Positions 1,293-14,199 of a stretch of DNA of 64,000 bases are shown here, in pieces; positions within the stretch are counted from its first letter, which is position 1; each line of letters opens with the position of its first letter. Position numbers and translations under genes: made by a program. Location: NCBI GenBank assembly GCA_025594325.1, contig JANHCV010000002.1, positions 1,550,001 through 1,614,000 on the forward strand. Reading direction: 5' to 3'. Below the pieces are notes generated by a model that searched no databases, was not told where the DNA came from, and saw only the letters and a list, made by a program, of their open reading frames with translations. The stretch comes from Blastocladiella emersonii ATCC 22665. Its lineage: Eukaryota; Fungi; Blastocladiomycota.

Positions 1293-1471
1293 TGTAAATA
1301 TCCGTGCTCCAGGAGGGAAGAACAGGCAAGGCGGTCGTCGCGGAGCTTTAAGCTGGCGGACTCCCAGTTCAGCCACATCACCTGACGTTCAATTTCGCTT
1401 TCTCTCCACCGCCAAGTCACTGCCGCGTCCTTCCGCGACCTCGATCCGTGCACGCCACATATGAGAAACCA

Positions 1472-3190
1472 ATGGAGAACGCCAAACTCGACTTGCTGCC
1501 CTCTGTCGTGATCGCGAACCTCGCCGCGTTCCTCGAAGGGCGCCAGCTCTCGCGGCTGCGGCAGACCTGCACTGCCATGAGCCGCGTGCCAGCCAACGTA
1601 ACGGCCAGCCGTGAGCACCTCGACTGGGCCCTTCGCCGCGGGTCATACACGCCGATACATCGGATTTATTTCGACCGTGCGATACGCCTTGATCAAAGTT
1701 CTGCTTACCGAGCAAGGCAGGTTCTGATCCGCGATGCAGTCGACTTGCTCGACGCTGACACGATTCGCGCCCTGCTTGACCCTCGCTCTCCGCGCGTGCA
1801 CGGCAAAGCGCTCGACGTGGAAGTGGCCTTCTTTCGCGCTCTACAACAGGTTGACCGAGGACGACCCGGTGCGGCTGAAATCGCGCGGATGTTGCTCGTC
1901 GACTCGCACATTTTTCCCTTCACGTTCGAGTTTCGCTACATGAGCGACCACGAATTCCTCGCACTGTGCACTACTGCTGCAGCTGTCGACATCGGCTCGC
2001 TTGTTGATGCGAATCTCCATCCGCTACACGTCTTGGTCGTCGCTGCCTTGGCCAGCGATTCGCGGACCGAGCGACTCCTTGACGCGTCATGGCCGACCGT
2101 CGTGTACAAGGCGTCTCCCAACTTGCCTGGACTGGTGGATGTGCTGCTCATCGCACTCCTGACAAACAATGAAGCGCCGACAATCAGCATTCTCGCTCGT
2201 CTGGTCACGGACCCGGCTATTCCGGTAGAGTATCCTGCTCACTGTTGGGAGTCTACCATGGATCTGGTTTTTCGCCAAGGCACGCCTGCGCTCCTTCGCC
2301 GTGTGTTATCGCACCCGGCCGCTCGTCTCGTGCTTCTTCGCCCCACCCATGCCCAGCTGTGTCGTGATATCGCGCAAGGAGATCCTACTGCGCTTAGCTT
2401 ACACCTCGAAAGCGGCGGTTTCCTCGAATCCAATTACGACGACGACGACGAGTACCACTTTCGCGACGCGGAAACATTCAAGGCATCAACGATCATTTGC
2501 CTCTCCTGGCGCCTTGGCGAGCTTGCGTGCTTTGATCGCTTGCTGACCATCGCTGCGAAGACCTGGTACAAAGGTCCCTCTTTCGTCATCGATCTCTTCC
2601 GAGAATTATGTATAAACTTGGACTTGGACTTGGACTTGGACTTGGACTTGGACTTGGACTTGGCTTGCGCAAGGCATGTCTTCACGCGACTTCTCGGCAT
2701 GGGTCCAACGGTTCACAAGATGATGGCTTCCGACTTCTTGTTGCTCGTTCGGCTCGGAGTCGGGGAAGCACGCGTGGACATGCTTGCCTGGTTGCTCATG
2801 GAAGCTGGTCCAGCGCTTGTTGAGGCTTCTGACGGAGCACTTGGTGTCGCAGAGACTTTGGCCACCATCACCGCGGCCATCTTGTTGCCCACCCCCATCG
2901 GTTCATTTGGTCAATCGGCTCAACGCCACCTCGATACGCTCACCTGGATCCTCAGCAACTGCGGTCCTGTTTCCACGCAGGACAAGCAGACCGCACTTGC
3001 TGCCGCGGATCCCCGCTGGAATCAGGCGATCATCGAGTACCTGCTGCGTGATCCAAGAGTTGATCCGTCGTTCGAAAACAACAAGCTGCTGGTTCGTGTT
3101 CAGCAAGCGGGTTTCCATTCGACTGCTGCACTTCTTTTGCGCGATCCGCGCGTTGTGGCCATCGAGCGTGCACGGTATGTGCAGCGCTGA
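1472..3190 (+). CDS. F-box-like / ankyrin-like repeat protein, paralog 1
   Basis: Intronless. ATG at 1472 is preferred over GTG 1448 because paralog 2 also starts MEN. N-terminal LDLLPSVVIANLAAFLEGRQLSRLRQTC fits the F-box pattern; C-terminal LLRDPRVDPSFENNKLL..VQQAGFHSTAALLLRDPRV is ankyrin-like. Confidence 0.75.
   Translation: MENAKLDLLPSVVIANLAAFLEGRQLSRLRQTCTAMSRVPANVTASREHLDWALRRGSYTPIHRIYFDRAIRLDQSSAYRARQVLIRDAVDLLDADTIRALLDPRSPRVHGKALDVEVAFFRALQQVDRGRPGAAEIARMLLVDSHIFPFTFEFRYMSDHEFLALCTTAAAVDIGSLVDANLHPLHVLVVAALASDSRTERLLDASWPTVVYKASPNLPGLVDVLLIALLTNNEAPTISILARLVTDPAIPVEYPAHCWESTMDLVFRQGTPALLRRVLSHPAARLVLLRPTHAQLCRDIAQGDPTALSLHLESGGFLESNYDDDDEYHFRDAETFKASTIICLSWRLGELACFDRLLTIAAKTWYKGPSFVIDLFRELCINLDLDLDLDLDLDLDLACARHVFTRLLGMGPTVHKMMASDFLLLVRLGVGEARVDMLAWLLMEAGPALVEASDGALGVAETLATITAAILLPTPIGSFGQSAQRHLDTLTWILSNCGPVSTQDKQTALAAADPRWNQAIIEYLLRDPRVDPSFENNKLLVRVQQAGFHSTAALLLRDPRVVAIERARYVQR
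2617..2663 (+). repeat. (CTTGGA)x7.8 coding microsatellite encoding a Leu-Asp run
   Basis: Seven perfect hexamers plus CTTGG, read directly from the sequence. Confidence 0.97.
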
Positions 3191-3499
3191 CTTGCAGATC
3201 GCTCAAGTTTGGGGGCATCCGGAACGGTTTCGCGTTGAAGAGGGGCATGAAAATAAACGGATTTAATGGCTTGGTGCCTTTTCAAACGAGCGTCAACGCG
3301 TCCCTGATTGATTCACGCGATGGTGGTCCCCTTGCCGAGTCGCGGCGGCGGAAGGACTGGCCGCGACGTTGAGAACGCGTCGCATGTTCAGCCACATCAC
3401 CTGATGCTCGGTGCGCCCTCGCTCTCACGCGCCCCGAAAGTCGCCGCAGCGCTCCTCGGCGAACCTTCCCTCGAGTACATGCAATCTAATGTGTAACTA

Positions 3500-5152
3500 A
3501 TGGAGAACGCCATGATTGACTTGCTGCCCTGGGATGTGGTTGCGCACCTCGCTGAGTATCTCGACGCGCGCCAGCTCTCGCGGCTGCGGTAAACCTGCAC
3601 CGCCCTGAGCCACACGCCCGCCAACCTGACCGTTGTCAATGATCACTTCCACTGGGCGATCCTCAAGGGATCGTACTTTGATCTACGCCCGCTGTTCCTC
3701 GAACACGGCCGCCTCTTCAAGCCACAAGCCGCGCAAGAAGCACTGCGGACCCTTCTTCACGGTGCCGTTGACGTGCAAGACGCACACCTGCTTCACATCC
3801 TCCTCAACCCACAATCCCCGTTTGCGCTTGGAGCAAAACGGTACCTTGGGCAGGCTTTTTTCCACGCGCTCGTGCAGGTGGACCGTGTTCGACCCCGCGC
3901 CATGGAGATGGCGCGCATGCTGCTCGTCAGTCCGCTAATCTTTCCATTCTCGCTTTGGTTCGCTGGAATGTCCGACAGCCTTGTCGATGCCTTGTGCGGT
4001 ACCGCAGCAACCGTCGATTTGGACACGCTCAGCCTCAGCGGCGCGGATCCGCTTCACGTCTTGGTCCTCGCCCTGCTCGCTGCTGACGCGCGGACTACGG
4101 CATTCATTGACGCGTCATGGACGACCATCACAGAAGGCGGAGCCGACCTTTGGCCCAAACTCACGGATCTGCTTCTCATCGCGCTCGTGACCAACAACGA
4201 GGTTGTCACTATGTACCTTCTCAATCGTATCGCTGCAGCAACACCTTTGCCCGCTGGGTACACGGCTTCTTCTTGGGAATCGACAGTGGACCACGCCTGC
4301 CGCAGGGCTCCACCTGCTCTACTTCGTCGGCTCATGACCCACCCGACCGCGAACATCATTCTCGAGCCGAACGCAGCCAAGGTTTGTCGCCTTATTGCAC
4401 TCGGCAATGCGACGGCTCTTCACGGACGGCATGGAAAACTCACACGCGCCTTTTTCATCCGCAACAGTGGCAGGATCGATGCCTTCACGTTCATCGCCCT
4501 GGCTTGGCGACTTGGCGAGCGAACTTATTTTGAACGCCTGGTCGATGCTGCGCTAAATTTCAGGCGTCACCGTCCCGAACTCGCCGCGACCTACTTCAGA
4601 GCTACTTGCGTTGACCTGGACCCCGACGCCGCTCAATGCTTTCTCGCACGCACGCTCGAGATGGGCCCTGATGTCTTCTATATGATCGTTTGGGATTTCC
4701 GGCGCATCGCCCGTGAGGCGGTCAGCAAGGCTCGCCTCGACATGCTTTCCTGGCTAATGACCACGGCGCGCCCGATCCTCCTCGGAGCGGTTGAGCCACT
4801 TCATCAAAATGTCGCGAAGTCACTCGGCATCGATACCGCCTATCTTGTGTTTACCATGGTCATCCGCGTGAATGATAGCTCGGCGCGGCAGCAGTTAGAC
4901 ATGGTCGCCTGGCTTTTGGACAACTTCGATGGGGGCACCGCAGCCAGAAAGCAGACCGCTTTGGAGCACGCTGGAAACTGCGGAAACCAAGTTATCGAGC
5001 TCTTGCTTCGTGACCCGGGCGTGGATCCGTCCTGCAATGGGAACCAACTGCTCAGGTCTGTTCAAGCGCGCGGTCTTCCGTCAACCGAAGCGCTTCTCCT
5101 TCGCGACCCGCGCGTTGCAGCCCTCGAACGCGAGCGGTACGCGCAGCTCTGA
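3500..5152 (+). pseudogene. F-box-like / ankyrin-like paralog 2 with an in-frame TAA
   Basis: ATG 3500 MENAMIDLLPWDVVAHLAEYLDARQLSRLR*TCTAL. The TAA at 3590-3592 aligns with CAG (Q) in paralog 1. The same frame continues into the 3773..5152 ORF, which ends LLRDPGVDPSCNGNQLL...LLLRDPRVAALERERYAQL. Confidence 0.8.
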
Positions 5153-5224
5153 ATCGTTCGATTTCGGCACCAGTAGCAAGGAATACGTGTTGTATGAGCG
5201 ATTGGTATGTACATGCAATGAATT

Positions 5225-7340
5225 TCAGTCGTCGAGCGCGTCGAAGCGGAGGCCGTCCAGGGCATCACGCGAATTGAGATCAAACGGCTTCGGCCCGCCG
5301 GCGGGCATGATACCCCGCGCAACGGCCTCGTCGTCGGACATGTCCTCGTCCGTCAGCCCGAACCGGAGCTCGTAGGGCGTGCTCATGGCGACGAGGAACT
5401 GGTCCTTGCGCGACCCGTCGTAGTGCTCGGGCACGCGGTGCTTCTTGGCCGCGTCGCGCAGCAGCGCCGCGTTGAACGCGTGCGCCTTGACGGCCACGGC
5501 CTGGATGTGCTTGATCTGCACGTACGGCCCGTCGACGGTCGCGGCCGCCGCGGCGGCGCGCGGCTTGGGCTTGGGGAAATACGCGTGGTACGAGTTGGCG
5601 GGCGGGGCCGGGTCGGCCTCGGCCTGCGCCTGCGCCTGCGCCTGCACCTGCTGCGCCTTGGCCGCGATGCGCACGTCGGCGCGGAAATCGTTGATGAACG
5701 TGTTCCCGAACACGACCGGGACCACGGGCGAGATGCCGGCCTGCAGGAGCCGGCGCGCCGCGGCCTTGAACGCGGCAATCGACTCGATCAGGGCCGTGTG
5801 CGTGGCCATGGGGATGTATGTCTTGGCCTTGAAGGCAGCGCGCGCGGCCTTGGAGCCTTTGGTGTGTGCGACGCGGTCGTTGACGGCCTCCTCCCACTCG
5901 ATGAAGAAGTCGGCGATCTCGTCAAGTTCCCCGATCGCCGTGTGGTTGAGGTTGGCGATCCGCTCGCGGCGGCCGACGAACCCCTCCCAGTACTTGCGCA
6001 TGGACACAACATAGAAGTGGGTCGCCTGGACCGTGTGCGCCGCGTGCAGCAGCCGCCCGCGCGTGCGCTCCGTGAGCGAGGGGTCGGTCCGCACCGCAAT
6101 GATGGGCTCGAGGAGCACCGCGCGCATCATGAAAGGAACGTGAGCTCCGATACCCGACATGGCCTTGTCGAGACCCAGGGACGGGTTGGCCTTGGGCTGG
6201 ATGTGGCCGTGGGCGGAACACCCGGTGATGTTGTAGAGCTTGGCGAGGCGCGGCTCGTCCTTGATGTACTAGGCCATGTTGCGCATGCAGTCGGCGCTGG
6301 CGACGCCGCCCGCGTGGTGCTCGAGCGTAAGCCGAGGGTCGGCGAACGCGTCGCGCAGGCGCATCACGACGGACAGCGGGTCGGGGAGCCAGATGACGGT
6401 CGGGTTGGCCGCGGACACGAGCTCGGCGGCCTCAGTGTACGTCTAGTTGCTACATGGCGAGCATGTACGTGATTAGCAGCCCGCTCCGGCGGTACGGCCA
6501 CAGAGAAGAGCATACCAGTCCGAAGACCACGAGAGCACCTCGAAACCCTTGTCCTCGAGCTGACCGACGATCTTGTTGATGCGGCCCGCCACGATCGTCG
6601 ACTTGAGCTCGCCGTACGTGAAAAAGCACAGCGGGTGCGCGATTCGAGTCGCGTGGCACCACATCATGAAGATGACCGCGCGGCGCCCGGTGCCCGGCGG
6701 CTCGTCATCGTCCGAGTCGCCGCCCTCGCACTCGGCGGTGGTCTGCGCGAGCTTGATCTCGGTGATCGAGAGGCTGACCATGGCCCTCGGCGTGTTGAGG
6801 CTGCCCGCGCCGCCGATAGCCGCGACGGCGAGATCGAGATGGACCGCGGAAAAGCCGGGCGGGAAGTCGGACAGGGACGCCGTCGGCGAGCAGCTCGAGT
6901 CAATGTCAGGTGCTCCCGCCGCAGTCGCCGACTTCTTGAGGTTCTTCTGGTGGATCCGCTTGATGCGCTCGACCTCGCGCATCCGCTTGGGATCGAGCGG
7001 AAAGTAGAAGGGCGTCTCGTGGGTACGCTCCTGCGGCGACGAGGCGTCATTGGTCGCGCCGCACTCGGCAGCGTACGCGCCGAACAAGCTAAACGGAAAG
7101 GCGTCAGGCGTCAGTCATCACTCTCGTCTTACACTGGCGCAACTTCCCGCACCTGCTAGTTGACGCGGGCCCATTCTTCATGGCCGCAGCGGGAGGTGCT
7201 GTCGTGCTGGTGCTCGAGCTCGATGCCGAACTCGCCTTGGCGCGCGGCTTCTTCTGCGGAGCGCGGCGGCCGCGGGGTCCGCGCGTAGTCGGGGCAGCGC
7301 CGCGAGGGCCGCTCGTGCTAGTGCTATCACTGACCATCAT
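5225..7340 (-). pseudogene. P-element/THAP9 transposase-derived gene, copy A, two in-frame TAG stops
   Basis: Exons about 7340-7153, 7088-6516, 6449-5225. Collinear with copies B and C (RAVIFMMWCHATRIAHPLCFF, GFEVLSWSSD, WLPDPLSV, IANLNH). TAG at 6445-6443 and 6271-6269, frame otherwise intact. Confidence 0.8.
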
Positions 7341-7562
7341 GTTGAGGGCTTCGTCGAGTCAAGAGTCTTGTTGCGTTCGTTGAACGAGAGAGAGGAAGAG
7401 CGTGGGAAGAGGTTCGACGCGTTTGGCGCGTTCCGCCACACGCTCGACTTGAAACAAGTCGCGTTGCGCCACTCATTCGGCCCAACTCTAAACAGAGGGA
7501 TACGCCCGAGTCTGATTAGCAATGATACCGTGTAATTAGCAATATGGATACAGAATGAACAA

Positions 7563-9674
7563 TCAACACGTGAAGCCGCCGCCATAGCTGCAGAACGGGT
7601 TCACGCCGCGCCACTCGGGCTTCTGCTCGACCTCCTCGTCACTCGACTCGTCGTCGTCCTTGGCGCCGATCTTGAGCTCGGTGCAGGCGAACATGTTCAA
7701 AATGGACTGGTGGGCGTCGGTTCCGTCGTAGTGGGTGACGGCGCGGCGCTTCTTGGCCGCGGCGCGGAGCAGCTTGGCGTTGTGCTGGTGCGCCTTGATG
7801 GCCGTGTCCTGGAGGTGCTTGACGTGGACGCGCGGGCGGTCGGCGGCGCTCTGGGCGGCGCACAGGTTCGGGCGGAACTGCTTCATGGCCTGTTTCTCGG
7901 CAATGACGCCCGGGTCGTTTCGGTCTGGCACGCCGGCCGCGGCGCGCACGTCCTTGAGGAACTTCTTGAGGAACGAGTTGCCGAACGCGACGGGCGCCAC
8001 GGGCGTGATGCCGACGTGCAGCAGGCGGCGCGCCACGGACTTGAACGCGGCAATCGACTCGATCAGCGCCGTGTACGTGTGGATCGGGACGAACGAGTAC
8101 GCGAGGCTGGCCGTGCCCTGGGCCGCGCGCTGGTCGGCAAACTCCTTCCACGCCATGAAGTACTCGGCGACCTCGTCGAGGTCCGCGATCAGCGAGTGGT
8201 TGAGGTTCGCAATCTTGGCACGGCTCATGAACGAGTCGCGGTACTTGATGACGTCCGACATGAAGCAGCCGGTCGCCTCGACGGGGAGGAGCGAGTCGAG
8301 CAGCCGGTTGCGTGTCGCCTTGTCGAGCTTCGGATTGTTCTTGACGGCGTGGATGGGCTCGAAGAACATCAGGAGTAGCCGGTTGGCGATGGAGGTCTTG
8401 ATCGCGTCGATCTTGAAGAACATGCCGAGATCGCGGTCGCCCTTGACATCGATGTGGTTGCCCGTAATGTTGTACAGCGGCGCGAGGCACGGCTCGCGCG
8501 AGATGAAGTGGGCCATGTCAGCGACGCAGCCGGGGCCCGCGATGCCGCCCGACGGCAGCTCGAGCGCGATGCACGGGTCGGCGAAGGCGTCGCGCAGGCC
8601 CTTCATGACGGAAAGCGGGTCGGGCAGCCAGGTCAGCGACGGGTTGGCCGCGGACACGAGGTCGGCGATCTTGTGGTATACCGGAGTGCTACACGGTGCG
8701 ACTCCGATGTCAGCAGTGGCCGAAGCTCCTTGCCGCGATCCCGCACGTACCAGTCCGAGAACCACGAAACCACGCTGAAACCCTTGGCCTCGAGCTCGCC
8801 GACCACCTTGCTGATGCGGCCGGCCACAAGCGCCGGCTTGACCTCGTTGTAGACGAAGAAGCACAGCGGATGCGCGAGCCGCGTCGCGTGGCACCACATC
8901 ATGAACACGACGGCGCGGCACTTGAGGCCGAGCGGCTCGTCGTCGTCCGGGTCGCCGCCGTCGGTCTCGGCCGTAGCCGCCGTGTCGCTGCTGGACGCGG
9001 CGTCGGCCAAAGCACTGCCGGGCGCGACCTTGATCTCGCTGATGGCGATACTGACCGAGGCTTGGGGCGTGTTGAGGTTGCACGCCCCGCCGATGACCTC
9101 GACGGCGAGGTCGAGGTGGATGTCAGAGAAGCCGGCAGAGAAGTCGTACACGGGCGCTGGCGCGTCCGAGTCGTCGACGGGCTTGGCCGCCGCCGCTCTC
9201 AAAGAAGCCGCCTTGGACCCGACGGACAAGAGCATGCGCTCGAGGCGGCGCAGCTGCTTGGAGGTGTCGGGGTCGGGCTCGCGGTAGAAGGGCGTCTCGT
9301 GCGTGCGCTGCTGCGGCGACAGCGAGACGTCGTCATCGTCGTCCTTATCGTCACTCTCGCTCTCGGTCTTATCCGGTTCACCTTCGATATTGAACCCGGC
9401 CATGAGCGACTCGAGCATCCGCTTCGCCTCATCGTCAGAAGCTTCATGCGAGCTAGACAGTCGCGTGCGCACGTCAGCTTTGTGAGCTCGCACATCGGCG
9501 CGCCAGCACGTACAAGCGCGAAACGGGTTGCATTTGCGGTGTGGTCGCCGCCGTAGTCTCCGTCTTGGGGCGCTGCTCCTGCTTCTTGGGGCCGGCGCGC
9601 CGCCCGCGGGGTCCACGCGTGGCCGGGGCGGAGCCGCGCGGGCCGCGAGTGCCGGGAGTGCCGGTGGTCATCAT
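7563..9674 (-). CDS. P-element/THAP9 transposase-derived protein, copy B, intact ORF, catalytically degenerate
   Basis: Exons 9674-9514, 9452-8751, 8688-7563 with GTACGT donors and TAG acceptors. Motifs AGFSDIHLD, VSIAISEIKV, RAVVFMMWCHATRLAHPLCFF, GFSVVSWFSD, WLPDPLSVMKGLRDAF, FGNSFLKKFLKDVR. Confidence 0.8.
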
Positions 9675-9900
9675 GGTCACGATGCGTTGAGTGGTTACGT
9701 TTTCATGCAATCGTTGAGCAATTGCAAGAGGGAGAGGGCGCGAGAGCGCGCGCAGAAAGACAGGCGATCAGCGACTGCCTTCGCGTCCCTCACGTGCGGA
9801 TGAGCGAGTCGTGTCGCGTCGCGCTCTGCCGATCTACGGCTCGCGGCCAATGCGCGATGATGATGGTATATTTGCAATGAGGGTGGGTGTGGAACGCTCG

Positions 9901-10180
9901 TCAGCTCTCTTCAAACGAGTCGCTGCCCAGCGTGAGCGATTCAAGAAGCTCGCTTGCGCTCGAACAGCCACGTCGGGCGAACTCCACGGCCATCTCATCG
10001 AAGAGCTCACCGTCCGAGTTGTAGTCGTCCCAGGACCCGAACTTGAGCTCTTTCGGCGTGCCCATGGCCATGAACGACTGGAGCGGGTGCGGTCCGTCGT
10101 AGTGGTCGGGCAGGCGGTTCAGCTTGGTCGCGTCGCGCAGCAGCGCCGCGTTGAACGCGTGCACCTTCCGTGGTCATCAT
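9901..10180 (-). pseudogene. Internally deleted derivative (copy D) of the same family
   Basis: ATGATGACCACGG at 10180 matches the copy B start. After 16 nt it joins, out of frame, HAFNAALLRDATKLNRLPDHYDG...MAMGTPKELKFG, which matches the C-terminus of copy A. Confidence 0.8.
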
Positions 10181-10519
10181 TGCGACTGCGTCTCACGTAA
10201 GCTCATCCGTTTCCGCCGATATAGAGTGAGTGCGCGAAGGCCGACGCGCGTGTGAAGCACGGCTGCGCCAGTCACGTTGAGGTGAAACACGTCGCGTCGC
10301 TCCACCAGTCGTGATTCCGGCCATCATCGGTCCAGGGAACCCTTGCTCAGCCCAGGCTCGTCGTCCTTGGGGTTCGGCGGTCGACAGAGATTTAACAAAA
10401 TTGCTATGTAGTGATGACAAAAACCCAGCCAGTCGTTTCGCTAATCAGTGCCCGCGCTCGCCCGCGTGAACGAGAGGGTCGTGGTGGACGGCCGAGTCCC
10501 ACACGATTTCCCCGTCATT

Positions 10520-12483
10520 CTAGTCGAGATCAAAGTCGAGGTCGTCGATGAGCGCGTCGACGTCCTCGTGCCCGTCCTCGGTGCCGACCATGAGCTCGTC
10601 GGACGACTTCCACACGCCCGCGTCGTTGTGCGGCCCGTCGTAGTAGTCGATGGTGCGGTCCATGTTGATCGACTCGCGCAGGAGCATCGCGTTCTGCTGC
10701 TGGATCTTGAGGGCCTCGTCGCTGATATGCTTATCCTCGACGCGCTGGCCGCGCGCGGTGCGGCGCACCAGGGCGAGGAAACCGTTGAGCAGCGAGTTGC
10801 CGAGCACGACGGGGACCACGGGCTTGACGTCCGTCTGGACGAGCCGGCGGGCCGCGGCCTTGAACCCGTCGACCGACTCGAGGAGCGCCGTGTACGTGTT
10901 GGGTGGGATGAACGACTTGGCCTTGAACTCGGCGCGCGCGGCGGCCGCCCCCCTGGCGTGCGCGGCGGGCGAGTCGACGGTGCGGTCGGCGCACGCGTCG
11001 TTGAGCCGGTTCCACACGACGGCGTACTTGACCACGTCCTCGAGCTCGTCGAGCACCGTGTGGTTGAGGTTGGCGATGCGCGCGCGGCTGCGGAACGCCT
11101 CGCGGTACTTGTACACGAGCCCGATGTAGAGCATGGTCGCGTGGATGCCCTTCATGGACGCCTGGTGCATGCGCGTGGACGCGCTGAGCGAGCCGTAGCC
11201 GATGAGCTCCTCGATGGGCTCGGCGAACATGAGGCGGAGCTTTTCGCCCGTCTCGACCGTGATGTCGGTGAGCGTCAGAGGCAGCGACACGCGCGGGTCC
11301 GACCTGAGCTGGATGGACTCGCGGGTGATGGTGTAGAGCTTGGCGAGGCGCGGGTCGCGCTGGATGACGGGGAGGAGCTCGGTGATGCAGAGGGTGCTCG
11401 CGATGCCGCCGCTGGGCGTGACGAGCATGAGCTCTTCGTTGGCCAGCGCGTCGCGCAGGCCCTTGATGACGCATGCAGGGTCCGGGATCCAGGCAATGGG
11501 CGGGTTCGTGGACACGAGCTCGTTGACCTTGTGGTACGTCGAGGTGCTACACACACCGAGGTCAGTCAGCAGCGAGTTGACGACGCAGCCGCCGCACAAA
11601 ACGTACCAGTCTGACGACCATGAAATGACTGTGAAGCCCTTGCTCTGAAGCTTGCCGACGACCTTGTTGATGTGGCCGGCGACGAGGCGCGGGCGGACCG
11701 AGTGGTACGTGTAGAAGCACAGCGGGTGCGCGAGACGGGTGCCATGGCACCACATGGAGAAGACGACGGCGCGAGTCGCGAGGCCCGACGCCTCCTCGTC
11801 GTCGCTCGAAGCGCCCTCCTCGCTCAACGCCGAGATCTCGGAGCTGGGCGACACCTCGATCTCGCTGATGGCGATGCTGACCGAGGCCTTGAGCGTGTGG
11901 AGGTACTGCTCGCCGCCGATGGCCGCGACGGCCTTCTCGAGGTGCAGGTCCGAGAAACCAGCGGGGAAGCCGCACGGTGCGCCGGGCGCGCGGTGCTGGG
12001 CGGGTGTCGCCCAGTCGGGCAGCGAGTCGGGGAGCGGGAGCCCCATATCGCGCATCACGTCGTAGATTTCGGGATGGGCGGAAACGAGCAGCGAAGCCAT
12101 GTCCCTGAACTCCTGCGACGGCTCGATGACGGTATCACCGTCCACGTCCGAGTCGGCGCACGCTTCCCTCACCTTTCGAGCCTGCTCGGCGAACAGGTTG
12201 AGGGCGTATTGGGCCCCGCGCGCCTCGATGCTCGCTTCGGAGACGGCGCCCTTACTATACACACTCGCGCAGGTTAGTCAGGTCGATGTTTCGACTCGCG
12301 CACCGTCGCACTCACATACCCGCGCGACAGGAGTCGTGAATCGGCAGCCGAGGTCTCACTGCTGGAGCTCGACGGAGCGGGCTTCTTGGTGCGCGGCTTC
12401 TTGGCCGTACTGCGGCGACCGCGAGGCCCGCGAGTAGCTGGCGCGGCGCTGCCAGTTCCGTTACTGCTGGGGTTAGGCGTCAT
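10520..12483 (-). CDS. P-element/THAP9 transposase-derived protein, copy C, intact ORF, catalytically degenerate
   Basis: Exons 12483-12320, 12254-11607, 11546-10520. PSQEFRDMASLLVSAHPEIYDVMRDMGLPLPDSLPDW, GFSDLHL, LATRAVVFSMW..HPLCFY, VGKLQSKGFTVISWSSD, IAWIPDPACVIKGLRDAL, GGIAS, LGNSLLNGFLALVRR follow the order and spacing of P-element/THAP9 blocks as I recall them. Confidence 0.82.
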
Positions 12484-12757
12484 GATTCTGCTGCGTCAAG
12501 TGGCGTTCTCGTTTACATCAAGCAAGGGTGAGAAAGGTAGCGATGGTTGGAGCAAAGCGGTCGCTCGTCGATCAGCTGCGGTGGGACGGAGACTGCCGAC
12601 TGCGCCACTCACGTTGACATGAAACGCCTCCCGACTGGCGCAGCGCGTTGCCTTACATGCATGCGCGAACTGTTGCTCGCAAAGGATCAATCTATACAGG
12701 GACATGGCGAGTGGAGGTTGGGCTATACAATGGCGGCCGGGGCCCGGCGGTCCGCTC

Positions 12758-14199
12758 TCACCGGCTCGTCGTGTTGAACTGGCCAAAGTAGGCCTCGGTG
12801 GGCGGGTTCGTGTAGACGATCGTGTCAATGAACTTCTTGCTACAAGTTCCAGAAGAGTTAGCGACCACCCTCAACGGAAGATCAACAGTAACGAGCGCCG
12901 TACCGGTCCTTGAAGTCGCTGGCCATGGCCTGGTTCTGGGCGAGCATCTGGCGCTCCTTGTCGCGCTCCTGGCGGTTCTTCTCGCGCTCCATGAGGACGG
13001 TGGCGCGCGAGACCCAGAACTGGTGCTTGTCCCAGGCCTTGTTGTCGCGGCGCTGCTGCTCCTGGCGCTCGTGCGCTTCCTTGATCTGGCGCTCGCGCGT
13101 GTCGCGGATCTCCTGGATCTGCTCGGGCGACATGCCCTTGAACGCGTCGATGCGGATCCTGCGAGTGAGGCAGATGGTTAGTGGAGTGGCGGAGCGGTAG
13201 GATCAGCGATGAGCGTACTTGTGCGGGCCGGGCTGCGGCGGCGCGGGACGCTCGGTCAAAAAGTCGCCCGTGACGTGCATCTGGATCTCCTCGAGGTTCT
13301 TGGCCGTCTCCATGCGCGCGTGCTCGCTGTCGCGGAGCTTCTTCTCCTTGGCCTGTTCGCGGACGTCGGTCAGCGCGTGATCCAGCCACCGCACGAGTGC
13401 CCGAACGTACCAGCTTGCGGTTGAACTCGGCGTCGTCCATGGCGATCTGTCGGCGATGGCGGCGGTCCATTTCGGCGAGGTACTGGATGCGGCGGTTGTT
13501 GGCCATGGTCTCCTGCTCGCGGCGCTCGTCTTCTTCCTCTTTGCGCTTGCGCTCGGCCTCGTTCTCGCACATCTTCTGCCACGACCACACCTGCATCTGA
13601 TCCTTCTGGGAGAGGATACGGCGGTCCTGCTCGAGGTCCTCGCCCTCGAACCGCTGCATGCCGCTGACCGTGTTGCGCGGGTCGACGTCGCCGATGCGGG
13701 CCGGGTGGTCGTTCTTGAGCAGGGCCGGGTCGTACAGGTCAAAGTCGCGGCGCATGCACGGCTGCTGGTGGTCGCGGCGGAACGCGTCCATGTCGCGGTG
13801 CAGCGCGCGGCGCGACGCGCATACCTTGGCATCGAGCATCTGCAGCAGGTCGTTGGTCTCGGTCGCGACGCGGTCTACGTGCGGGAGGCGAGAGTGGTGA
13901 GTGGGCGACGGCTTGCACGAGAGAGGGAGGTAAGGCGTACCCGAGACATCGTTGCGCTCCTGCTCGATGCTCTTCAGTTCGTTCTTGACGCGGATCTGCT
14001 CCTCGAGCCCTTGGACGTCGATCTAGCGAGCCACGCTGGTCAGCCCATGCGCCGACGAGTGCACGAACCCGCAAAGCCGTACCCCCATGACGCGGACTTT
14101 GGGGTCAAAGATGCGCTTCATGCGCTCCTCGTCGAGGCGGCGGCGGCGCTGCACCGCCTGGTACTCCGTGAGGTCGAGCGGATGGTCGAGTTTGTACAT
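12758..14199 (-). CDS. RIB43A: RIB43A-like coiled-coil axonemal protofilament ribbon protein, multi-exon
   Basis: MYKLDHPLDLTEYQAVQRRRRLDEERMKRIFDPKVRVMG, DFDLYDPALLK, SGMQRFEGEDL, RIRIDAFKGMSPEQ, final exon YTNPPTEAYFGQFNTTSR* (TGA 12760-12758). Confidence 0.92.

Follow-up and report, generated by a model that had tools for sequence, protein, structure and literature searches.

The window analysed here is a stretch of 64,000 nucleotides (nt) from Blastocladiella emersonii ATCC 22665 (positions 1550001-1614000 of assembly contig 11), a GC-rich eukaryote whose genome assembly amounts to 32.65 Mb in 21 contigs. Comparison by tblastn of the long minus-strand open reading frames (ORFs) with the window reveals an array of three head-to-tail, minus-strand, three-exon paralogues, designated A, B and C, together with a short fragment. 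The subject of this report is the descent of these genes from a transposase and the fate of the active site they inherited. An earlier reading made from the letters alone (the sequence-only reading) had assigned all three copies to 7563-12483; B and C do lie inside this range, whereas A lies outside it, at 5225-7340.

Each gene carries two short introns of 60-66 nt with the signals GTAYGT...CTGAC branch site...YAG, so that the continuous ORFs of A, B and C, which had earlier been taken for the proteins, are not the proteins. The joined coding sequence of C is in frame, with a single stop at its end, and the protein of B equals the database protein P0002 (H9P43_002455), differing only at the first Met. 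A frameshift in B was considered and rejected, the break being the 62-nt GT-AG intron 2 at its family-wide position. Database and structure searches used C as a read-through ORF, in which the in-frame intron 2 adds 20 residues beside the second Asp, and B in the form of P0002; the joined coding sequences of A, B and C were used for codon analysis only.

A six-frame search of the genome yields further copies: C2a and C2b on contig 2, a truncated copy, C21, on contig 21 (P0005), and, on contig 1, two divergent copies in tandem, C1a (P0006, H9P43_000371) and C1b (P0007, H9P43_000370). In the database C2a is part of P0001 (KAI9168557). The fragment between B and C in the array is an internally deleted fourth copy (the mini-copy), in which an MMTT-type start is joined to the C-terminal module (...LLRDA...HYDG...); it is closest to the A/C2b type. 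Among the five full-length members of the A/B/C clade (A, B, C, C2a and C2b), the joined three-exon models of four (B, C, C2a and C2b) are free of stops. Copy A contains two in-frame TAG codons, both of which are bypassed by extra introns in its public annotation (P0004, H9P43_002454). A is a recent pseudogene: its branch is no longer than the others in spite of the two TAG codons, which argues that its inactivation is recent.

Matches to the TNP-like RNase H N-terminal domain (PF21787) reach 20.2 bits for C and 21.3-21.8 bits for B, below the cut-off of 24.6 bits, and the annotated model of A (P0004) has no match. Neither copy C and P0006 nor the family profile matched any transposase when PDB was searched by sequence and profile. 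Taken by themselves, these results would also suit a merely generic RNase H-like resemblance, with an origin of the family in another transposase or integrase superfamily, or in none, and because few eukaryotic transposase structures have been solved, the nearest solved fold is not necessarily the true parent. Such an origin is nonetheless very unlikely in view of the remaining comparisons. Two paralogues pass the PF21787 cut-off (P0006, 35.2 bits; P0001, 30.9 bits), as does C2b in the genome scan (27.2 bits), and the protein-language-model neighbours of P0006 and of B residues 150-610 all belong to TNP-like/THAP9 clusters (scores 0.94-0.96). An AlphaFold2 model of B, built on an eight-sequence alignment of the family, has a mean predicted local distance difference test score (pLDDT) of 61.8, with residues 230-450 above 80. 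Foldseek ranks the Drosophila P element transposase first for this model (6pe2_A and 6p5a_A, E 9e-9), followed by RAG1 and Transib (E 2e-3), and VIA-align superposes it on P transposase with a Z score of 19.8 and a root-mean-square deviation of 4.0 over 321 residues (model 156-589 on chain 200-566), at an identity of 11-14%. Bare integrase cores give a Z score of 11.8, and therefore the match spans the insertion domain and not the RNase H core alone; RAG1, Transib, Tn5, Mos1 and ISCth4 fall far below P transposase. After beta5, where the P signature puts its motif, the proteins have a D-P-x-[H] K-x-L-R stretch. A, B and C descend from a P-superfamily (P element/THAP9-type) DDE (Asp-Asp-Glu) transposase.

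In the B model the insertion domain comprises about residues 324-521, is mostly helical and lies between beta5 and alpha4. It aligns with that of P transposase by VIA-align despite the lack of a profile signal, since the GTP-binding insertion domain (PF21788) has no match at E up to 1 in any paralogue and none in the genome. The C-terminal part of the RNase H domain (PF21789) likewise finds no paralogue at E up to 1, and only one unrelated sub-threshold match in the genome. The P0006 model is poor (mean pLDDT 47.6), and for this reason only its top match (6p5a, ranked first, Z 12.2) and its beta1 anchor were used. The THAP domain (PF05485) is matched neither in the family proteins nor anywhere in the genome. 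THAP domains are reported to be restricted to animals (PMC7776569), so their absence in a fungus is expected, and the basic first exon of the family (RGPRGRR/KKPR) need not be a THAP 'replacement'. The C-terminal tail of the family proteins is acidic.

The signature of P transposase consists of D230 on beta1, D303 at beta4 and E531 on alpha4, with a [C/D](2)H motif (D339) directly after beta5 and a GTP-binding insertion domain at 339-528 (PMC8230255; PMC7776569). Residue numbers given here for B refer to the 662-amino acid (aa) model and exceed those of P0002 and the AlphaFold model by one (S192 = S191, D287 = D286). In P0002 numbering, beta1 of the B model spans 185-194, beta4 spans 279-285 and is followed by D286, beta5 spans 306-309 and is followed by D310-P-L-S313, and alpha4 begins at 522. 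Cores of human immunodeficiency virus type 1 (HIV-1) integrase aligned to this model by VIA-align all start with model residue 184 at integrase residue 57 (offset 127), which puts integrase D64 on S191 (P0002 numbering) of the ISEI string. On the P0006 model they start with residue 30 at integrase residue 57, so that D64 corresponds to D37. S191 of B and D37 of P0006 also share one column of the family alignment, which is independent of the structural anchors.

The residue strings on which the sequence-only reading was based (ITEI/ISEI/ISEI, INDF/LKKF/LNGF and DPLS/DPLS/DPAC in A, B and C, and WSSD/WFSD) are all present in the spliced genes, and the secondary structure of the B model and the integrase anchors support their placement at the catalytic positions (Table 1). 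In A, B and C the beta1 carboxylate is replaced by Ser or Thr, the alpha4 carboxylate by Asn or Lys, and the His of the D(2)H motif, whose loss had been correctly noticed, by Ser in A and B and by Cys in C. Of the DDE triad only the second Asp is present in the three copies, and it is invariant in 7/7 copies in which this column is present; the Asp of the D(2)H motif is kept as well. The retention of this Asp and of the surrounding scaffold was likewise read correctly, as the B model indicates. The model and its anchors bear out the loss of the first Asp and of the His, while the Glu column stays loose by some 2-3 residues. The P0006-6p5a alignment, for example, ends with 393 at 532, whereas the motifs would pair D394 with E531, a discrepancy of two residues. 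For B and C this uncertainty is immaterial, because neither has an acidic residue within 2-3 residues.

Two metal ions have to be coordinated for DNA to be cut or joined, which the single Asp still present cannot do, and we infer from this that A, B and C are catalytically dead. This presumed loss of activity is deduced from the two-metal chemistry and from the mutagenesis by which D230, D303 and E531 of P transposase have been tested (PMC8230255).

Table 1. Gene models, active-site codons and family signatures (positions in the window)
Feature	Position	Strand	Details
Copy C, intact	10520-12483	-	exons 12320-12483, 11607-12254, 10520-11546; 612 aa
Copy C introns	12255-12319; 11547-11606	-	second intron 60 nt, in frame; read from DNA
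Copy B, intact	7563-9674	-	exons 9514-9674, 8751-9452, 7563-8688; 662 aa
Copy B introns	9453-9513; 8689-8750	-	second intron 62 nt; read from DNA
Copy A	5225-7340	-	exons 7153-7340, 6516-7088, 5225-6449; structure as in B and C
Copy A, first TAG (codon 256)	6443-6445	-	3 codons into exon 3; CCG in B and TCG in C
Copy A, second TAG (codon 314)	6269-6271	-	in frame, exonic
Mini-copy, between B and C	9901-10304	-	tblastn match 9991-10167, repeat families D4/D6, translation
First-Asp column, B Ser192 (AGC), ISEI	9038-9040	-	mid beta1; model secondary structure, integrase anchor
First-Asp column, C Ser185 (AGC), ISEI	11864-11866	-	equivalent of B Ser192
First-Asp column, A Thr172 (ACC), ITEI	6761-6763	-	equivalent of B Ser192
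Second Asp, B Asp287 (GAC), WFSD	8753-8755	-	kept; directly after beta4, one codon before intron 2
Second Asp, C and A, both WSSD	C 11609-11611; A 6518-6520	-	kept; equivalents of B Asp287
D(2)H motif, B D311-P-L-S314	8610-8621	-	His position Ser, 8610-8612; directly after beta5
D(2)H motif, C DPAC	11471-11482	-	His position Cys, 11471-11473; equivalent of B DPLS
D(2)H motif, A DPLS	6371-6382	-	His position Ser, 6371-6373; equivalent of B DPLS
alpha4 start, B N525...K529	7965-7979	-	site of catalytic Glu and of Asp three residues before
alpha4 start, C N...N and A N...N	C 10784-10798; A 5690-5704	-	equivalents of B N525...K529
Glu column codons	A 5690-5692; B 7965-7967; C 10784-10786	-	A INDF, B LKKF, C LNGF; alignment
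C signature			first Asp S; second Asp D; D(2)H His position C; Glu column N
B signature			first Asp S; second Asp D; D(2)H His position S; Glu column K
A signature			first Asp T; second Asp D; D(2)H His position S; Glu column N
C2a signature			first Asp G (VGEI); second Asp D; D(2)H His position S; Glu column N
C2b signature			first Asp T; second Asp D; D(2)H His position S; Glu column N
C21 signature			first Asp S; second Asp, D(2)H and Glu columns deleted
C1a signature			first Asp D; second Asp D; D(2)H His position H; Glu column D
C1b signature			first Asp D; second Asp D; D(2)H His position H; Glu column N

It could be argued that the proteins remain active as nucleases or transposases through other acids, for example the Glu next to the lost Asp or an Asp or Glu in alpha4. 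A Glu does follow the lost Asp directly in all copies (ISEI, ITEI, VGEI); however, it is no substitute, because copies with an intact catalytic Asp also have an acid (Asp) there (VDDL, VDDR), and a neighbouring residue on a beta strand faces the other side. In alpha4, A and C2a have an Asp one residue past the Asn and B has one five residues on, and the Glu column is placed to 2-3 residues only. Yet C has no Asp or Glu anywhere in alpha4, that is, for about 20 residues from the helix start, and the search for alternative acids in the triad, which the sequence-only reading had named as a way to overturn it, turned up no acidic alpha4 position common to the copies. With the His of the signature motif lost as well, we give residual activity hardly any credence.

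The time of the loss is set by comparison with the other members of the family. The first Asp is absent from 6/6 members of the A/B/C clade, and the His and Glu are absent from all five full-length ones. The contig 1 pair has first-Asp codons GAC and GAT and the D(2)H motifs DPRH and DPVH. The protein tree places ((C,C2a),(B,(A,C2b))) opposite (C1a,C1b), with supports of 95/76/98/100 and a stem of 1.42, the two clades being about 27% identical. Because the contig 1 pair keeps Asp, Asp and His, the tree assigns the disappearance of both the first Asp and the His to the stem leading to the A/B/C clade. C pairs with C2a and A with C2b, from which it follows that contig 2 received a copy of the array. 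These two residues thus disappeared only once, at a time that precedes both the tandem duplications and the copying to contig 2, in agreement with the earlier proposal that catalysis was lost before duplication. The Glu may have been lost already in the ancestor of the whole family, as its column holds Asp in C1a and Asn in C1b.

The shared lesions had also been described as non-random, which is an overstatement with no statistical showing. The shared states are simply inherited by descent, and between two clades of only about 27% identity three changed columns are statistically unremarkable. In the first-Asp column the codons can be linked by single steps (GAC-GGC-AGC-ACC), and the His column reads TCC, TGC or AGC; these two sites have evidently gone on drifting, whereas the positions next to them have remained fixed.

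The family is known from this genome only. Of 1.84 billion representative proteins searched by phmmer with copy C, only seven matched, all from this assembly, all singletons and most of them 'hypothetical', and P0006, used whole and as residues 9-180 in word-indexed searches, found only itself in a set of 5.8 billion proteins. P0006 was considered as a possibly active enzyme with three Asp residues (DDD) and was rejected, since its gene is frameshifted and has no inverted repeats and its sister copy has Asn at the Glu column. The annotated 29-nt intron of P0006 cuts the conserved A-[IV]-G-G motif, and the plain reading is a frameshift. P0007, annotated with 291 aa, continues in homologous reading to about 440 aa, including the alpha4 region (P0006/P0007 locus: contig 1 1068001-1078000, minus strand, local about 6640-8042). 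KAI9168557 (812 aa, 'rRNA-processing protein') appears to be an annotation fusion of a WD40 gene and C2a (contig 2 1416001-1426000, local 2704-6041), in which C2a has its own ATG and basic first exon (local 3985-4175). C21 has kept the start and the C-terminal module but suffered an internal deletion whose breakpoints differ from those of the mini-copy, making the two deletions independent. A 993-aa ORF on contig 4 (493513-496494, minus strand) was considered as an intact relative by which the changes could be polarised and was dismissed, as hhalign finds no relation to the A/B/C family (probability 0.1). This ORF has a weak PF21787 match (22.6-26 bits) and FDET and TFDG strings that resemble DDE motifs.

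The question of whether the genes have been maintained is complicated by their base composition. The ratio of nonsynonymous to synonymous substitution rates (dN/dS) among the copies is 0.8-1.0 by the method of Nei and Gojobori (NG86). We attribute these values to saturation: GC content at third codon positions (GC3) is 0.90-0.92 in the copies, third positions are near saturation, and the Nei-Gojobori ratio is consequently unusable. It was rejected as a measure, and codon models with codon frequencies were used instead. The dN/dS ratio (omega) under GY+F3X4 is 0.23 for all sites, 0.19 for the core and 0.31 for the linkers, and under MG+F3X4 it is 0.44, 0.40 and 0.52, respectively. We read these values as purifying selection of moderate strength, acting on a protein for which the active site has ceased to matter.

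The principal competing explanation is that the genes are decaying leftovers, without a host function, of an extinct P-like transposon, and that the open frames of B and C reflect youth or luck. Decay is plainly visible in the family: copy A carries its two stops, the frameshift of C1a is concealed by the annotated 29-nt intron, C21 and the mini-copy are internally deleted, and no copy is found beyond one genome. The NG86 ratios, and an omega that reaches 0.44 under MG, point in the same direction. Youth, however, is difficult to reconcile with copies that differ at 26-46% of sites, all three codon positions about equally, while B, C, C2a and C2b have neither stop nor frameshift; no frameshift is present in 5/5 full-length copies of the A/B/C clade. 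A neutral simulation yields 3.4 stops per copy at 0.1 substitutions per site, where the probability of none is 0.02, and more than 6 at 0.2, so that luck would have to intervene in each copy at a probability of at most 0.02. Omega stays below 1 in both codon models, which also agree in giving the linkers a higher value than the structured core, and GC3 is held at 0.90 when the GC content of introns and spacers is 0.51-0.65. All five full-length copies of the clade have their two introns at the same positions, and even the contig 1 copies, at 27% identity, have the phase-2 intron that follows the second Asp; the intron sequences have diverged past alignment, yet splice signals, branch signals and positions are retained. 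Simple decay without function is in our judgement unlikely. The proposal of the sequence-only reading that the fold was kept, as in a pseudoenzyme, is upheld by the omega values of 0.23-0.44, the four stop-free copies and their GC3, with the qualification that selection is moderate and that A has been disabled.

The family is not a mobile element. Terminal inverted repeats are absent around every copy and around the contig 1 pair, where only imperfect repeats at chance level occur (70-93%, 14-34 nt), and the copies of the array, as head-to-tail neighbours, lack the terminal inverted repeats and 8-bp target duplications that mark mobile P elements. The genes thus have no transposon ends.

We consider it probable that A, B and C belong to a family of non-catalytic nuclear proteins that reuses the DNA-cradling scaffold of a dead P-type transposase. 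The ancestor lost the beta1 carboxylate, the alpha4 carboxylate and the D(2)H His before the tandem duplications and the copying to contig 2, and its descendants have kept the split RNase H-like fold, the mostly helical insertion domain and the acidic C-terminal tail. The genes would afterwards have stayed open under moderate purifying selection, and the proteins may serve in the nucleus by binding DNA or partner proteins through the old scaffold and the basic first exon; the DNA-binding role, like the loss of activity, is inferred, whereas the homology, the residue states, the timing and the selection signal are shown by the analysis. The family turns over by birth and death, with A just disabled by its two TAG codons and two other copies internally deleted.

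Several points weigh against this interpretation. The family occurs in one genome only, so that cross-species orthologues, the usual proof of domestication, are missing, and A, C1a, C21 and the mini-copy are no longer intact. Selection is only moderate, and Nei-Gojobori ratios of 0.8-1.0, with codon positions that differ about equally, leave room for near-neutral evolution. The mean pLDDT of the B model is only 61.8, although the core is above 80; the residues are placed by structural anchors and motifs, not by residue-by-residue alignment to the P transposase sequence, and for the Glu column this placement is approximate. The P origin and the dead active site are more certain than the retained function.

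A more specific scenario can be put forward tentatively. A THAP-less P-type core might have been tamed in Blastocladiella into a lineage-specific, tandemly expanding and catalytically dead DNA-binding family, whose members could act as regulators or, in a dominant-negative way, protect against a P-like element whose last trace would be the contig 1 pair. P-type transposases are known mainly from animals, and if the scenario were true, fungi would gain their first described case of P-superfamily domestication.

The proteins resemble Drosophila P element transposase (6P5A/6PE2) in the split RNase H-like domain, the helical insertion between beta5 and alpha4 and the acidic C-terminal tail; the segment before beta1 aligns from enzyme residue 200 onwards, and the second Asp and the D of D(2)H are kept. 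They differ from it in the loss of the D230 and E531 equivalents and of the D(2)H His and in having neither a THAP domain nor a PF21788 signal. Unlike the P element itself, the genes have no 31-bp inverted repeats or target duplications that could be found, and their introns are short, of a fungal type and located elsewhere. Human THAP9 is similarly P-derived, without inverted repeats and with the RNase H fold and insertion domain kept (PMC7776569; PMC8230255). THAP9, however, keeps D304/D374/E613 and has remained an active cut-and-paste enzyme; it is a single-locus gene with a THAP domain and vertebrate-wide orthologues, whereas the Blastocladiella genes have lost two triad residues, lack THAP, are multi-copy and are known from one species.

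The P-derived neogenes of the Drosophila obscura and montium groups are immobile and without transposon ends, and those of the obscura group lie in tandem repeats and are thought to be non-catalytic. The Blastocladiella genes are likewise immobile and P-derived, and tandem as in the obscura group, but they have kept the catalytic fold with a dead site and have no THAP domain, the reverse of the neogenes. To our knowledge, the documented tamed descendants of P (THAP9 and the Drosophila neogenes) all keep the THAP head. If our tentative scenario holds, the family would mirror the Drosophila neogenes, in which the DNA-binding head survives and the catalytic body is gone.

Loss of catalysis with reuse of the fold has precedents in other superfamilies. 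SETMAR, FHY3/FAR1 and CENP-B are transposase-derived host proteins in which the triad is lost or changed and the DDE fold serves as a DNA-binding or regulatory factor. In contrast to the present genes, they come from mariner, Mutator and pogo, respectively, and have documented functions and cross-species conservation. The triad of SETMAR, for example, is DDN (PMC8230255). Transposase-derived pseudoenzymes are therefore a well-known kind, of which A, B and C are a new, lineage-restricted fungal example: an early-diverging fungus holds a THAP-less P-type core whose active site was lost once and which was then duplicated and kept. The A/B/C clade and its two relatives with the ancestral Asp, Asp and His form a natural series for the origin of a pseudoenzyme and for the role of a scaffold without catalysis.

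There are also practical consequences. Simple dN/dS ratios are meaningless at a GC3 near 0.9, a general trap for this genome and a warning for genome scans. In addition, public annotation is corrected at three places, namely the fused KAI9168557, the hidden stops of H9P43_002454 and the hidden frameshift of H9P43_000371.

Finally, we note some features of the surroundings. An A-rich motif (TGTAAAC / GAAAACG type) is common to the upstream regions of A, B, C and C2a, within about 60 nt of the ATG; in the array it falls in 7341-7420, 9675-9760 and 12484-12560 and is possibly a common promoter element. Immediately downstream of the array are two paralogous long ORFs, 1448-3190 (+) and 3773-5152 (+), that have in common an LLRDPRV-type C-terminal ending; the former has only a faint F-box match (E 0.03). 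Directly upstream of C lies a gene for the flagellar protofilament-ribbon protein RIB43A (12871-13839, minus strand; Pfam E 2e-35 over the first 146 residues), in which the remainder of the ORF appears out of frame and an intron is likely. A flagellar gene beside the array is consistent with a zoosporic fungus.

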